This document shows, piece after piece, positions 29,462 through 47,938 of a DNA stretch of 64,000 bases (position 1 is the stretch's first letter; every line of letters begins with the position of its first letter). The notes below the pieces were generated by a model. That model was not told the origin of the DNA. It made no database searches and saw only the letters and a list, made by a program, of their open reading frames with translations. The stretch is from the sequence record OU509535.1; one strand, 5' to 3'. Made by a program: the position numbers and the translations under genes.

Positions 29462-31546
29462 ATGTCATTAACTAACTTAAATTCATCAAACTCAAAAAGT
29501 ATGTTAATTAATTCTGGTACATTTAGAAGTGGGGTGTACATCACCTCACAAAACCAAATTTTAACATATACAGATAGTAATGGGATGACTGCTGGATATT
29601 ATTACACTGGCCCAGTTCCATATACTACCACCAAAAATACACCACAGAGTGATAGTGCACTTTGGAAAGTTATGTTCATTGCAGATAAGTACTCTTATCT
29701 AAAATCTGACATTGTACCAATTACCAGTGGTGGTACTGGAGCTAATAATATATCTAATGCAAGAACTAACTTTGGTTTAGGGACTGCTGATACCCCAACG
29801 TTCCAGAGTCTCAATATTCAGTACAGTTCTAATGAACCAAAAATTAATTTAAATAATTCCATCATTAGATCCAACACCAGTAACGCATTAGTTGTTAGTG
29901 CATTACAAGGGATTTATTTACGTCCAGCGGGTGACAATGTTTCGAGTACACAAATTTTATATTCTACTGATGGATCATTGACAATGACAAACACTAATGT
30001 TACAGTTAACGGTAATGTTAGTGTTAACGGTAGTTTAACATTAAGTACTGCATTAGCACTTTCAAGTGGTGGTACTGGAGCAACTGATGCACCCACAGCG
30101 AGAACAAATTTAGGATTAGGTACATCATCAACTGTTGATACTGGTACAAGTGGTGCCACAATTCCATTGCTAAGTACTGCAAATACATGGTCATCTACTC
30201 AAACTATACAAGGCAACTTAGTTGTTGGTGTATCAGGTACGAGTACTATTAATTTGGGTGCTTCTGCTTTTATGCGAGATAATGGATCAAAAGCATTAAT
30301 TATCACGTCCAACTCAGCATCTGATGCATCCCCTGCTGGTCTGTATCTAAGACCAATGGGTGATACTGTAAGTACAGTGCAAATTTATGGTAATAGTACT
30401 GGATGGTCAGTCAATGGTAATACTCAAATTTCTGGAACATTTTCTAATACAGGAAATGCTTCATTTTTGAATAGTGCGTATACAGTTGATAGTACTGGGA
30501 TATACTCATCAAGTACTGGTAAAGTGTTGGGTGCTGTTGGTACACCGTGGAGTAATACTTATACTAATACATTAACATCTGGTACATCAGCACAGCTTTA
30601 TTTGAATTCAACATCCGGTACTATAAATTTACAAAATTCCGGTGTAACCACATATACATATACATCTAGTGCTTTTAGTCCAGCAACAACGGGTAAAAAC
30701 TCAGCGGCGGTTGGAACTCCGTGGAGTGTAACATATAGCAATTCTGTTACATCAGGAACCAGTACTGCATTAACTTTAAATGGTACTTCATCCAACATAA
30801 ATATGCAAATAGCTGGAACTACGATATTGCAATTGGGGTCAGCTAACCTAATTATCAACAATAACATAGGAATACAATCTAAAAATACTTCAAATACAGC
30901 ATTAGATTTGATAAAAATTGATAGTTCTAATATTTCACAAATTGGTAATACATCAATTCCAACAAATATTAATTCTTCAGTTAATCCTACGGTCAAGGTT
31001 GGTGCAAATACTTATACATTGTATAGTACTGGAAACAAACCTACGGTAAGTGCATTTAGAGCAAGCTATTTAACCACCGCTGGTTCTGATTCTAAACAAA
31101 CATTAACTGCATCTAATACACCACAGACTTTATTGGTCAATACTATAACTGCTGCGTCGAGTATTATAACTGCTAACACCAGCACTGGAACATTCTTATC
31201 AAATGTCACACAAGGAATGATGTTATGCATAAGTGCTCAAATCATTAGAGAAGTAACTGGTGGTGGTGATGTTTATTGGATGATGTTTTTGGAAACAAGT
31301 CCTGATGGAACGACATGGACACCAGTTACAGGTTCAAATAGAATAGTTACATTAAGTTCTAGTACTACAAATGAAATGAAACAAGTAGATTTTTCAGTAG
31401 CAATACAATCTACAGCGGGAACATATCTTAGAATTCGACATGCATGTACAGATAGTACTAAAACCGTTTCTGTAATTTCTAAAGATTCATTATTTGCCGG
31501 TGTTCCAATTTCATCTGGTTTGATAGTAAGTTTCTTAACTATATAA
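29462..31546 (+). CDS. Tail fibre protein
   Basis: Shortened MSL.NL N-terminal module; two GGTGA...ARTN(F/L)GLG fibre motifs; Ser/Thr/Gly-rich shaft. Confidence 0.82.
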   Translation: MSLTNLNSSNSKSMLINSGTFRSGVYITSQNQILTYTDSNGMTAGYYYTGPVPYTTTKNTPQSDSALWKVMFIADKYSYLKSDIVPITSGGTGANNISNARTNFGLGTADTPTFQSLNIQYSSNEPKINLNNSIIRSNTSNALVVSALQGIYLRPAGDNVSSTQILYSTDGSLTMTNTNVTVNGNVSVNGSLTLSTALALSSGGTGATDAPTARTNLGLGTSSTVDTGTSGATIPLLSTANTWSSTQTIQGNLVVGVSGTSTINLGASAFMRDNGSKALIITSNSASDASPAGLYLRPMGDTVSTVQIYGNSTGWSVNGNTQISGTFSNTGNASFLNSAYTVDSTGIYSSSTGKVLGAVGTPWSNTYTNTLTSGTSAQLYLNSTSGTINLQNSGVTTYTYTSSAFSPATTGKNSAAVGTPWSVTYSNSVTSGTSTALTLNGTSSNINMQIAGTTILQLGSANLIINNNIGIQSKNTSNTALDLIKIDSSNISQIGNTSIPTNINSSVNPTVKVGANTYTLYSTGNKPTVSAFRASYLTTAGSDSKQTLTASNTPQTLLVNTITAASSIITANTSTGTFLSNVTQGMMLCISAQIIREVTGGGDVYWMMFLETSPDGTTWTPVTGSNRIVTLSSSTTNEMKQVDFSVAIQSTAGTYLRIRHACTDSTKTVSVISKDSLFAGVPISSGLIVSFLTI

Positions 31547-31552
31547 TAAAAA

Positions 31553-31583
31553 AAAAAGCCGCAATTTATGTTGCGGCTTTTTT
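31553..31583 (+). terminator. Terminator ending the RBP cluster
   Basis: AAAAAGCCGCAA-TTTATG-TTGCGGCTTTTT. Confidence 0.85.
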
Positions 31584-31631
31584 ACATTATGATATTATTA
31601 CATCATTCTAAATCCATTTAAAAATCTTTTG

Positions 31632-31660
31632 TTGACAAAGGATCTATTTTAAGTTAAAAT
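31632..31660 (+). promoter_or_regulatory. Sigma70-type early promoter
   Basis: TTGACA-17 nt-TAAAAT ahead of 31689. Confidence 0.75.
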
Positions 31661-44842: not shown

Positions 44843-45250
44843 GTGATTTCATTGGAAGGTACATTACAATATGATCCACCAAGGACTATTAAAATCAATG
44901 AACCTTATTGGTTAGTACTAAACCTACCAGATGAAATTATTAAGTACTACCAATGGTTTGTTCGTAAAGAACTATTCATTGATATTAAAGATCCTCCACA
45001 CAGTGCTCATGTGAGCATAGTTCGTGGTGAAGTTCCTCCTAATATTGATATGTGGAAAAAATATGATGGGATGGAATTACATTTCCAATATTATCCATAT
45101 ATTACAATTAAAAAGGATGAGAAAAATCCAGGAAATTTTTTCTTTATTAACTTTTATTCTGATAAAATAATGAACATTCGAGACGAACTGGGATTATATT
45201 CCAAATATTCCGAGTGGCATTTTACGATTGGTAGAACTCACTACGACTAA
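44843..45250 (+). CDS. 2H phosphoesterase family protein
   Basis: Two HxS/T motifs (AHVSIV, WHFTIG) about 80 aa apart; GAGG SD with GTG start. Confidence 0.72.
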   Translation: MISLEGTLQYDPPRTIKINEPYWLVLNLPDEIIKYYQWFVRKELFIDIKDPPHSAHVSIVRGEVPPNIDMWKKYDGMELHFQYYPYITIKKDEKNPGNFFFINFYSDKIMNIRDELGLYSKYSEWHFTIGRTHYD

Positions 45251-45257
45251 ATATAAT

Positions 45258-45291
45258 TTGACATTAAATGAAATCAGTATTAAAATACTGA
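45258..45291 (+). promoter_or_regulatory. Sigma70 promoter with an inverted repeat across the -10 box
   Basis: TTGACA-17 nt-TAAAAT; TCAGTAT-TAAA-ATACTGA overlaps the -10. Confidence 0.7.
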
Positions 45292-45306
45292 GATTGTTAA
45301 GTCCAT

Positions 45307-45376
45307 AGTGGCTTGATGCGGAAAAGCCACTTTCTGTATCAAGCCTTTTATTAAACAAAAAAGGAGAAATACAGAA
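45307..45376 (+). promoter_or_regulatory. Alternative-structure leader (terminator / antiterminator / anti-RBS)
   Basis: Helix B 45310-45324/45331-45345 (15 bp, 2 G:U) plus U tract; helix A 45307-14/45324-31; helix C 45332-39/45369-76. Confidence 0.6.
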
Positions 45377-45377
45377 C

Positions 45378-46280
45378 ATGGCGAAACATAACAGAAAAAC
45401 CATCAAAAAGCTTATTCTTTTAAGTGGTTTAACTGTTCTTGCTGCCGCTACATTTGAATTTAACGCTTTTTCTAATAACGATCACTTATCATCGCAAAAG
45501 GTAAGTATACAGGAACCGCATATTCAGCAAATTCAAAAGCAAGTACTTAATATTACAGTACTTAACAGCGAGAATGAAAAATACACGGTACAGGCTGGTG
45601 ATACATATAAAAGTATTTCCGTTAAATATAAGCCAAAAAACGTGAAACTATCCGAGTATATCACATTAATAAAAAATATTAATTTGAATGCTCCTATTAG
45701 AACTTCTCAAGTTATCCTCTTACCTAATAAAGAGGATTTGCAGAGCATTATGACTGATGAGGTTATAAAATTCGATTATACAAACCCAAATTTTATTTCT
45801 CACTTAAAAGAACAAGAGGGATCAAAAAAATATCAAAGTACTACTAAACGTAGATTGTTAAATGGTACTTATGGTTATTCTTACAAAAACTCTAAGTTCT
45901 ATCCATACAGAGATAGCTATGGTAATTACACCATAGGCTTCGGTCATTATATTTCTCGTAATGAATCAGTTGCAATGAAGTACAAAAATGGCATCAGTAC
46001 TAAGGAAGCACATGATTTATTACTTGAAGATCTTAAAGTTACTGATTTACAATTAACCAAGTTATTACAAGAAAAGAATGTTAAAAATTTGAGTCCATAC
46101 CAAGAGAGGGTATTATTTGAAATGACATTTATGTTAGGTTCAGATAAATTGTCAAAATTCCATACAATGTGGAGTGGTATTAAAACTGGAAATCATAAAA
46201 AGGTTAAACAGGCTATTGTCAATTCATTGTGGTATCGTCAGGTACCAAATCGTGCTGAATTGCTGGTAAACAATCTTTAA
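45378..46280 (+). CDS. LysM-domain lysozyme (T4-type/GH24-like) with N-terminal hydrophobic segment
   Basis: YTVQAGDTYKSI (LysM), YRDSYGNYTIGFGH, FMLG..LSKF and SLWYRQVPNRA lysozyme motifs. Confidence 0.85.
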   Translation: MAKHNRKTIKKLILLSGLTVLAAATFEFNAFSNNDHLSSQKVSIQEPHIQQIQKQVLNITVLNSENEKYTVQAGDTYKSISVKYKPKNVKLSEYITLIKNINLNAPIRTSQVILLPNKEDLQSIMTDEVIKFDYTNPNFISHLKEQEGSKKYQSTTKRRLLNGTYGYSYKNSKFYPYRDSYGNYTIGFGHYISRNESVAMKYKNGISTKEAHDLLLEDLKVTDLQLTKLLQEKNVKNLSPYQERVLFEMTFMLGSDKLSKFHTMWSGIKTGNHKKVKQAIVNSLWYRQVPNRAELLVNNL

Positions 46281-46296
46281 AACATTTTTTTTGGCA

Positions 46297-46326
46297 TTGA
46301 CAACATTACAGATTGTGTGTTATAAT
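46297..46326 (+). promoter_or_regulatory. Consensus sigma70 promoter
   Basis: TTGACA-18 nt-TATAAT. Confidence 0.8.
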
Positions 46327-46351
46327 AAAGGGACTTTAAGAGTCCCTTTTT
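46327..46351 (+). terminator. Terminator after the lysozyme gene
   Basis: AAAGGGACT-TTAAG-AGTCCCTTTTT. Confidence 0.8.
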
Positions 46352-46831: not shown

Positions 46832-47938
46832 ATGAAAAAATATCTGGTAGGTGGTTATTGTCGTGATCGTCTTATGGGATTAAAACCAAAAGACAAAGAT
46901 TATGTCATTGTTGGTGCTAATGAATCAGATATAAAATATCTGGAAAGTGCTGGATACAAACAGGTTGGTGTTGATTTCCCTGTGTATTTGAGTCCAAAGG
47001 GTAATGAATTTGCATTAGCTCGTGTAGAAAGAAAAACAGGGAATGGATATGGTGGTTTTACCGTTGAAACAAAAGGTGTCACTCTTGAAGAAGACTTATC
47101 TCGTCGAGATTTGACAATTAATAGTATTGCATATGAACCACTAATGGGAATCCACATTGACCCATTTAAAGGAAGAGATGATATTAAAAATAAAATCTTG
47201 CGTCATACAAGTTCAGCTTTTAGTGAAGATCCACTCCGTGTTCTAAGGCTTGCTCGTTTTGCTACACGTTTTCAGGATTTTACTATTCATTCTGATACTG
47301 AACAAATGGTAATTGATATGGTACAAAGTGGTGAAACTGATTACTTGGTACCTGACCGAGTTTATGTTGAATTTAAAAAAGCATTTTCAGAAGAAAAACC
47401 AGGTCGATTTATTAAAGTATTAAATGATATTGGATATATTCCCAAAGTACTACCTAAGTTTAAATGTACTAAAAAGAACATCGAATTGATTGATTATATT
47501 TCGATGAATTGTACTGAACAATGGAAAGATTATTTCATTTGGAGTGTATTACTACAGGATGAAATTACTAATATTGAATCTAAAATCCGTGTACCACAAA
47601 AATACATTAAATTTAGTTCTTTTGTAGACCGTATGAAGGAAAATATTAAAACGTTTCGTAAAAAATCAGTAGAGGAAATGTGTGATATTCTCTTTGATAT
47701 GAATATCAAAAATAACGGTGGTGAAGAGTTTTTATATAAAGTACTGGAGTATTTTATTCTACGAAAAGAAATTGATGTAGACTTAGAAGACTTGATTATT
47801 AAAGTATATGACAGATATGATAGTACTGTCATTCCTGATATTCAGGAAATGGTAAAAGCTGGGGAACTTGATCCAAAAGACATTCGTGATTTTGTTCAAA
47901 ATACACGCTATCATGAAATTAAAAAAATGTTTATCTGA
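46832..47938 (+). CDS. cca: tRNA nucleotidyltransferase (CCA-adding enzyme)
   Basis: YLVGGYCRD...KDKDYV, EFALARVERK, EEDLSRRDLTINSIA, FSEDPLRVLRLARF. Confidence 0.95.
   Translation: MKKYLVGGYCRDRLMGLKPKDKDYVIVGANESDIKYLESAGYKQVGVDFPVYLSPKGNEFALARVERKTGNGYGGFTVETKGVTLEEDLSRRDLTINSIAYEPLMGIHIDPFKGRDDIKNKILRHTSSAFSEDPLRVLRLARFATRFQDFTIHSDTEQMVIDMVQSGETDYLVPDRVYVEFKKAFSEEKPGRFIKVLNDIGYIPKVLPKFKCTKKNIELIDYISMNCTEQWKDYFIWSVLLQDEITNIESKIRVPQKYIKFSSFVDRMKENIKTFRKKSVEEMCDILFDMNIKNNGGEEFLYKVLEYFILRKEIDVDLEDLIIKVYDRYDSTVIPDIQEMVKAGELDPKDIRDFVQNTRYHEIKKMFI

Follow-up and report, generated by a model that had tools for sequence, protein, structure and literature searches.

The 64,000-nucleotide stretch of DNA from sequence record OU509535.1 that we analyzed (hereafter the window) carries on its + strand a gene for a 300-amino acid phage lysozyme, and the subject of this study is the RNA leader in front of that gene, which a preliminary description of the sequence had presented as a three-helix switch. 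Over 1.5 kb around the leader the DNA matches nine records of Klebsiella jumbo phages (RaK2, K64-1, Muenster, RCIP0023, KP13-7, and others) at 97.8 to 100% identity, and by sequence the window is assigned to a RaK2/K64-1-like Klebsiella jumbo phage of the genus Alcyoneusvirus. The lysozyme has a Phage_lysozyme domain and an N-terminal hydrophobic segment, with a LysM match below threshold. Its ortholog in phage CBB, CBB_187, is a predicted endolysin whose N-terminal transmembrane domain is of the signal-arrest-release (SAR) kind, whose homology to LysM is weak, and whose cloning was toxic (PMC5259590). The 300-amino acid protein is predicted to be the SAR-type endolysin of the Rak2-like phages. 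Orthologs with 38 to 50% identity are found in Asteriusvirus (PBECO4, JNE01), Eneladusvirus (BF, Yen9-04), and Mimasvirus (GAP32, CBB, XbC2), in the unclassified phages fENko-Kae01, Kaldavass, and Hallingskeid, and in jumbo-phage contigs of IMG/VR. All orthologs outside Alcyoneusvirus start with TTG or GTG, 5 to 6 nt past a strong Shine–Dalgarno (SD) sequence; the window gene starts with ATG, 11 nt past its SD, and the long spacer is taken up by helix C, one of the leader pairings.

The features of the locus are listed below in order of position; RBS stands for ribosome-binding site and MFE for minimum free energy.

45258–45286, + strand: sigma70-like promoter TTGACA-N17-TAAAAT, an 11/12 match in a pattern scan (−35 at 45258–63, −10 at 45281–86, predicted +1 at about 45293)
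45274–45291, + strand: small inverted repeat TCAGTAT/ATACTGA, 7 bp and perfect, with loop TAAA, overlapping the −10 hexamer
45294–45308, + strand: conserved box, UUGUUAAGUCCAUAG in the window and GUAGAAAGUCCAAA in relatives; 45296–45303 is the 5′ strand of helix H0
45296–45303 with 45310–45317, + strand: helix H0, 8 bp, from the MFE fold of the leader
45307–45331, + strand: helix A hairpin, 45307–45314 with 45324–45331, 8 bp; its 5′ strand is common to helices B and H0
45310–45345, + strand: helix B, 45310–45324 with 45331–45345, 15 bp including 2 G:U, 6-nt loop
45326–45382, + strand: RBS-masking hairpin, composed of GCCA (45326–29) with UGGC (45379–82), helix C, and CCUUUU (45344–49) with AAAAGG (45359–64), the pairs outside helix C being those of the MFE fold; it covers the SD (45361–66) and the AUG (45378–80)
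45332–45339 with 45369–45376, + strand: helix C, 8 bp, lying between the SD AAGGAG (45361–45366) and the ATG (45378)
45346–45352, + strand: U-run UUUUAUU after helix B, a possible terminator tail that together with CC (45344–45) is also an anti-SD
45378–46280, + strand: the putatively regulated gene, 300 amino acids, with an N-terminal transmembrane segment, a LysM-like region, and a T4-type lysozyme domain

Helices A and B, the TTTTATT run, the SD, and the ATG of the preliminary description were all found where it had placed them, the fold beats shuffled sequences, and the helices recur in relatives. The 93-nt leader folds at −26.4 kcal/mol (z = −3.97; 1 of 200 shuffles as good), energies throughout being nearest-neighbor predictions. 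The arms of helix B form a duplex of −23.0 kcal/mol (z = −7.6 against shuffled partners), and the RBS-masking pairing reaches −20.7 kcal/mol (z = −5.5). A and B are mutually exclusive, as had been claimed, and co-variation keeps both. Helix C is present and the 3′ arm of B alternatively pairs with the RBS region, but the mask is larger than had been seen: it has 18 bp, with helix C at its center, and covers both SD and AUG. The box, helix H0, and the inverted repeat are additions to the earlier picture.

A homologous leader precedes every ortholog compared. Counting each different sequence once, there are 18 such leaders, drawn from four genera (Alcyoneus-, Asterius-, Mimas-, and Eneladusvirus) and from phages that are unclassified. 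Their common order is a small hairpin, the box, a conserved strand (G-N-G-N-CUUUGUGCA in relatives, GUGGCUUGAUGC in the window), a variable stretch, and then a strong SD with the start codon, and they share one architecture: the hairpin, the box, helix A, a long helix B that reuses the 5′ strand of A, and an RBS mask that reuses the 3′ arm of B. Seven Alcyoneusvirus genomes have one variable column in the 127-nt spacer (one A inserted in an A-run), and their variable columns amount to 8.3% in the upstream open reading frame (ORF) and 1.0% in the lysozyme ORF. The leader is invariant in this genus, and these genomes demonstrate conservation and not co-variation.

For helix A, the 5-mer G-N-G-N-C has a perfect complement 16 to 20 nt downstream in 14 of the 18 leaders. 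When 16 leaders were aligned, the four alignable pairs were kept in 96.9% of cells, with 12 compensatory cells and one position that occurs as C:G, A:U, and U:A; none of 500 shuffles was as good, and slid controls were 33 to 72% paired. Most relatives extend the helix inward to a GCAA (GNRA) tetraloop, and the window has a loop of 9 nt. The 5′ strand of helix B, made up of the A 5′ strand, the A loop, and part of the A 3′ strand, is complementary to a downstream segment in every lineage, with duplex energies of −10 to −23.5 kcal/mol, and 17 of 18 leaders beat at least 96% of shuffled partners. The 3′ arms of B have unrelated sequences between lineages, and because MAFFT failed to align them across clades we used permutation tests that compare duplex energies with own and with foreign partners. 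The own downstream partner gave a mean of −18.0 kcal/mol versus −13.4 kcal/mol for foreign ones (none of 5000 permutations did as well). When each of seven lineages was represented by a single leader, the correct matching of arms ranked first among all 5040 possible ones, and it was still among the best 5 when the variable distal half of the arm was used alone.

The RBS mask behaves in the same way. In each lineage, the 3′ arm of B, sometimes joined by the 3′ strand of A, is complementary to the SD/start region, significantly so against shuffles in 16 of 18 leaders, and the own-versus-foreign comparison was matched by 0 of 5000 permutations, or by 3 of 5040 when each lineage contributed one leader. 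In the Mimas/Eneladus clade taken alone, the mask is paired in 94% of cells, with 4 compensatory cells, and RNAalifold run on this clade independently gives H0 plus the mask. Co-variation in relatives, which the preliminary description had named as a check, is thus present for A, for B, and for the mask across phage lineages. We conclude that the pairings exist, that they are mutually exclusive, and that each is preserved by co-variation in at least four phage lineages.

The box is nearly invariant across genera and can also be written GUAGAAAGUCC (UUGUUAAGUCC in the window). It occurs once in each of the RaK2, CBB, GAP32, and PBECO4 genomes, where near-matches appear at the frequency of reversed controls. 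This single copy per genome rules out a repeated cassette and also the repeated promoter motif that we had considered. A strict pattern scan of IMG/VR found the box only in contigs of these jumbo phages, and the scan of 185,579 prokaryote genomes gave one hit, a chance match that lies in GC-rich DNA of coding-like character in a cyanobacterial metagenome-assembled genome. In helix H0, the box is paired with the shared strand in 99.3% of cells, with one compensatory change, in the window; since there is only this one, H0 is plausible and not proven. The conservation of the box may reflect the three alternative partners of its partner strand, or something may bind it. A long-range partner for the box, sought from 400 nt upstream to 1100 nt downstream, was found at no position consistent across clades, and we found nothing relevant in the literature on the box sequence or on Alcyoneusvirus transcriptomes.

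In the window, the best structures with each alternative pairing are nearly isoenergetic (A plus mask, −27.8 kcal/mol; B, −26.4 kcal/mol; H0 plus mask, −26.4 kcal/mol), and the predicted ensemble holds about 51% A and about 23% B. When the transcript is grown from 45293, the MFE structure is H0 at 24 to 36 nt, A at 40 to 44 nt, and B at 48 to 88 nt, a range that includes synthesis of the U-run. Transcripts long enough to contain the RBS adopt masked folds, first H0 plus mask (92 nt) and then A plus mask (96 nt and longer). Full-length leaders of the relatives are masked at equilibrium, with the SD mostly paired and B at 0.16 or below. In 11 of 18 leaders, B is the MFE structure at the transcript length at which the SD emerges.

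The 5′ leader is probably a cis-acting element with several conformers that controls whether translation of the membrane-anchored lysozyme, the predicted SAR endolysin, can start. The strand at 45307–45324 would pair with one of three partners: the upstream box (H0), its local 3′ strand (A), or the distal arm at 45331–45345 (B). The distal arm could alternatively pair with the RBS region, forming the mask that includes helix C. Formation of A or H0 would leave the distal arm free to mask the SD and AUG (OFF), and formation of B would expose the RBS (ON), so that B would serve as the anti-sequestor, the mask as the sequestor, and A and H0 as competitors of the anti-sequestor. Such a leader would keep a toxic muralytic enzyme low, with expression coming from a transient or stabilized B conformer, and it probably prevents too-early synthesis of an enzyme that cuts the cell wall. 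TTG and GTG are weak start codons, and we count their use in the relatives in favor of this reading. The switch to B might be triggered by co-transcriptional kinetics, by processing of the RNA at the box, by a box-binding factor, or by a late RNA polymerase resistant to termination.

Several observations count against this reading. It offers no explanation for how B would come to be favored in vivo, since our checks for a leader peptide, a thermometer, a known aptamer, and a long-range partner supported none of them. In 7 of 18 leaders B is never the MFE structure when the box is included. Within the Mimas/Eneladus clade, helix B is 82% paired, which is not above shuffles (pair counts on the MAFFT alignment), and with so little co-variation inside this clade the support for B lies between clades, where the permutation tests take phylogeny into account only through the use of one representative per lineage. 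The mask is not significant against shuffles in the two Asteriusvirus leaders, and two tandem anti-SD copies in that genus blur the ON/OFF logic. In the Kae01 clade the mask uses the 3′ strand of A, meaning that the wiring varies between lineages.

The alternative that comes closest is transcription attenuation as the primary function, with B and its U-run as terminator, A as antiterminator, and a sensed signal setting read-through. An attenuator was also among the preliminary proposals, and several features of the window would suit it. Helix B fits an intrinsic-terminator pattern (15-bp stem, 6 G:C pairs, 6-nt loop, UUUUAUU tail), A excludes B, B is the MFE structure as the U-run is made, and a promoter-like site lies just upstream. 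Among the terminator-like sites between 40 and 50 kb, of which there are 8 versus 2.3 expected, the one formed by B and UUUUAUU is the strongest of these 10 kb. With its 15-bp stem, the G:C pairs at the foot of the stem, and the UUUUAUU tail, B in the window would be expected to terminate a bacterial RNA polymerase to some degree. However, the U-run after helix B is missing from the leaders of Asterius-, Mimas-, and Eneladusvirus and of the unclassified relatives, though A and B are conserved there; the U's are needed as anti-SD as well; read-through RNA would remain masked; and no sensing element was found in the form of a conserved leader peptide or an Rfam aptamer, although the invariant box could be a protein site. 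The one short frame in the leader, a 12-codon ORF at 45316–45354 (MRKSHFLYQAFY) that spans helices A and B and stops in the U-run, begins at an AUG in the shared strand that aligns with GUG in relatives, where the frame is 3 to 47 codons long and has neither an SD nor peptide conservation; we rejected it as a sensor on these grounds. Since the U-run is limited to Alcyoneusvirus and its U's double as anti-SD, the sequences are best read as conserving translational masking and unmasking of the RBS, with termination not being the ancestral role. The terminator reading of B is thus consistent with the pattern in the window and fails outside the genus, and attenuation, at most a lineage-specific add-on, is unlikely as the primary function.

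The same genus restriction weighs on a trans-acting small RNA. The segment 45293–45352 could be a promoter-to-terminator unit giving an RNA of about 57 nt with the box as seed, much as the preliminary description had imagined for an RNA of about 55 nt, and a nearly invariant, single-stranded 5′ box followed by a terminator hairpin with a U tail would look the part. The layout fits Alcyoneusvirus only: relatives have the box without the terminator, the Mimas-, Eneladus-, and Kae01-like lineages are also without the promoter there, and the conserved promoter and terminator of its own that mark an Hfq-type small RNA are seen in this genus alone. Co-variation moreover ties the element in cis to the RBS of the downstream gene, and we found no complementary site above control frequency in the phage genomes and no conserved partner nearby, which makes a small RNA quite improbable. 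A metabolite-binding riboswitch or RNA thermometer would account for a leader whose alternative folds govern access to an RBS, and we identified no sensor of another kind. There is, however, no conserved junction or pocket, and the loop of A differs between lineages. Rfam 15 gave no match at gathering score in the window and none at E ≤ 1 in five relatives, and permissive thresholds (E up to 1–5) returned sub-threshold noise for the window leader. With neither an Rfam match nor a conserved pocket, the riboswitch-like device that had been suggested is unlikely to be a metabolite riboswitch. For a thermometer, the predicted A/B balance and SD exposure are flat over 20 to 45 °C (P(B), 0.31–0.38; SD exposure, 0.45–0.49; window), and we rejected it because the exposure barely changes. 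We give this pair of explanations hardly any credence. Nor do we put much trust in fortuitous hairpins in AT-rich intergenic DNA, or a terminator of the upstream gene, with no regulation at all: AT-rich phage DNA does yield many chance promoter-like matches, but the z of −3.97 for the leader fold, the co-variation in A, B, and the mask, and the conservation of the intergenic region within the genus make mere chance scarcely credible. The preliminary interpretation is thus supported in its multi-conformer leader placed to silence a muralytic gene; its attenuator, riboswitch, and small-RNA readings are unlikely.

One further possibility is a trigger-specific version of translational gating and not a full rival to it, namely that the box, the small 5′ hairpin, and H0 form an operator or processing site for a phage or host protein or RNase, whose binding or cutting would set the leader fold. 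The box is conserved far beyond what pairing needs, it is single-copy per genome, and the adjacent hairpin is kept in position and not in sequence. On the other hand, we found no candidate factor, and the three alternative partners of the partner strand could explain the conservation of the box. On balance, such a site is rather unlikely.

The closest known relatives of the proposed gating are RBS-sequestering leaders. Similar leaders occur in T4 at gene e (lysozyme), soc, 49, and I-TevI, and in T4 the block is relieved by late promoters located within the DNA that encodes the helix's 5′ strand (PMC3014915). As in T4 gene e, the window has a phage lysozyme gene in an early-read region with SD and AUG in an intramolecular helix, which would make early transcripts poor templates for translation, and sequestration of this type is predicted both by the MFE fold and by the duplex test in the window, and likewise in the relatives. 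The T4 gene e leader was reportedly treated by McPheeters and colleagues in 1986. The analogy to it that had been drawn holds for RBS sequestration and not for the internal late promoter, which is absent: a T4-type late promoter (TATAAATA, at most 1 mismatch) was found in none of the 18 leaders, and the nearest site (TGCAAATA, 2 mismatches) lies in the A/B 5′ strand and would not relieve masking. Unlike T4 gene e, the window leader has a competitor helix B, a second competitor in A/H0, and an invariant box, and the two leaders have no sequence similarity.

Terminator/antiterminator attenuators include those of trp, pyr, bgl, the T-box, and similar systems. The window resembles them in that a local hairpin, A, excludes a downstream helix, B, with a U-run, and differs from them in that its terminator-like conformer exposes the RBS and its read-through conformer masks it, in that no sensor was found, and in that all other genera lack the U-run while keeping A and B. 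Toxic genes are known to be delayed by metastable or sequential folding of their mRNAs, as in hok/sok and other type I toxin mRNAs and in the MS2 maturation gene. Like hok-type mRNAs, the leader has a chain of alternative pairings that links a conserved 5′ element with the RBS of a gene with a toxic product. Stepwise MFE folding gives B transiently in 11 of 18 leaders, and the masked state dominates at the predicted equilibrium, so that the leader may be open for a time during synthesis. In contrast to hok/sok, no antisense RNA and no long-range 5′–3′ pairing were found here, and the genes are unrelated. Promoter-early stem-loop (PeSL) cassettes are said to have been described in T4-type phages by Arbiol and colleagues in 2010. 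They share with the window an early-type promoter followed by a stem-loop before a gene of a T4-related phage. PeSLs, however, are many per genome and precede diverse small ORFs, and the box element, found once each in RaK2, CBB, GAP32, and PBECO4, is a single-copy element tied to one orthologous gene across genera.

In Alcyoneusvirus, gating of translation could be combined with termination into a double lock. Helix B with its U-run would terminate part of the transcripts from the early-type promoter, so that early transcripts would be either terminated (B) or read through yet masked (A plus mask). We know of no described precedent for such a terminator/mask double lock. More tentatively, the leader could be a dedicated lysis-timing riboregulator of Rak2-like jumbo phages, in which a late trans-acting factor (protein, RNase, or RNA) reads the invariant 11 to 14-nt box, flips the leader from masked to open, and releases the endolysin. 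Because the open conformer would double as a terminator in Alcyoneusvirus, only late, termination-resistant transcription would then give translatable mRNA. We regard this possibility as worth stating and as less than even.

Jumbo phages are under consideration as therapeutic agents, among them Klebsiella phages of the RaK2 and K64-1 type, and to our knowledge lysis timing in jumbo phages with long latency is largely unknown. A single-copy, conserved RNA element at a predicted SAR endolysin in at least four genera would offer a concrete way into that timing, open to mutational testing, and with the leader phage biology would gain a family of cis-regulatory RNA not described before. If the Alcyoneusvirus layout, in which the RBS-opening conformer is terminator-like, works as proposed, it would be a new combination of transcriptional and translational silencing. 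If the leader merely dampens translation passively, it would be an ordinary, though well conserved, RBS hairpin.

The transcript on which the leader would act had been proposed to start at about 45293 from a sigma70 promoter. An 11/12 site does lie there, and it is intergenic, as are 5 of the 7 + strand matches of at least 11/12. The count of such matches in the window is 8 observed versus 7.3 expected, which is not above chance, and the promoter match by itself is weak evidence. Phages of the CBB group have RpoD-like early promoters, a gp55-like late sigma factor, and an ATAAATA late motif (PMC5259590). The inverted repeat at 45274–45291 matches in position the small hairpin that lies 2 to 4 nt 5′ of the box in related lineages, where these hairpins, unrelated in sequence, keep an equal position in 16–18 of the lineages. 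Because the repeat overlaps the −10 hexamer and its position is kept in relatives, it must either act at the level of DNA or belong to a functional RNA whose start lies upstream of the predicted +1. Public runs that contain the window sequence are wastewater metagenomic contigs, probably of DNA, with neither ends nor direction and with patchy depth.

Upstream of the leader, the 135-amino acid ORF at 44843–45250 (PHROG 12204, of unknown function) occurs as two haplotypes among the seven Alcyoneusvirus genomes. Its 8.3% variability, compared with about 1% in the spacer and lysozyme gene, suggests a recombination boundary at or near its stop codon. Downstream, at 46297–46349, a perfect sigma70 consensus (TTGACA-N18-TATAAT, 12/12) lies between the lysozyme gene and the next ORF and is directly followed by a 10-bp hairpin with a T-run (46327–46349), annotated as a terminator in the Muenster record. 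Since the predicted +1 of this promoter, at about 46333, falls inside the 5′ arm of the hairpin, the hairpin could end lysozyme transcripts and yet be absent from the promoter's own transcripts. In Asterius-, Eneladus-, and Mimasvirus, the lysozyme gene is followed by a gene for an HPF/RaiA-like ribosome hibernation factor, in the Kae01-like phage with two small ORFs between them; the window has a 153-amino acid ORF of unknown function in its place. A gene for a CCA-adding tRNA nucleotidyltransferase (46832–47938) lies two genes downstream of the lysozyme gene. Elsewhere in the window, at 31520–31600, a promoter-like TTGATA-N16-TATAAT overlaps the end of an ORF. Past it comes a symmetric terminator, in which a 12-bp hairpin rich in G+C is flanked by an A-run on its 5′ side and a T-run on its 3′ side. 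The intergenic promoter at 31632–31660 has hexamers identical to those of the 45258 site, and its leader, in contrast to that of the lysozyme gene, is short and unstructured.

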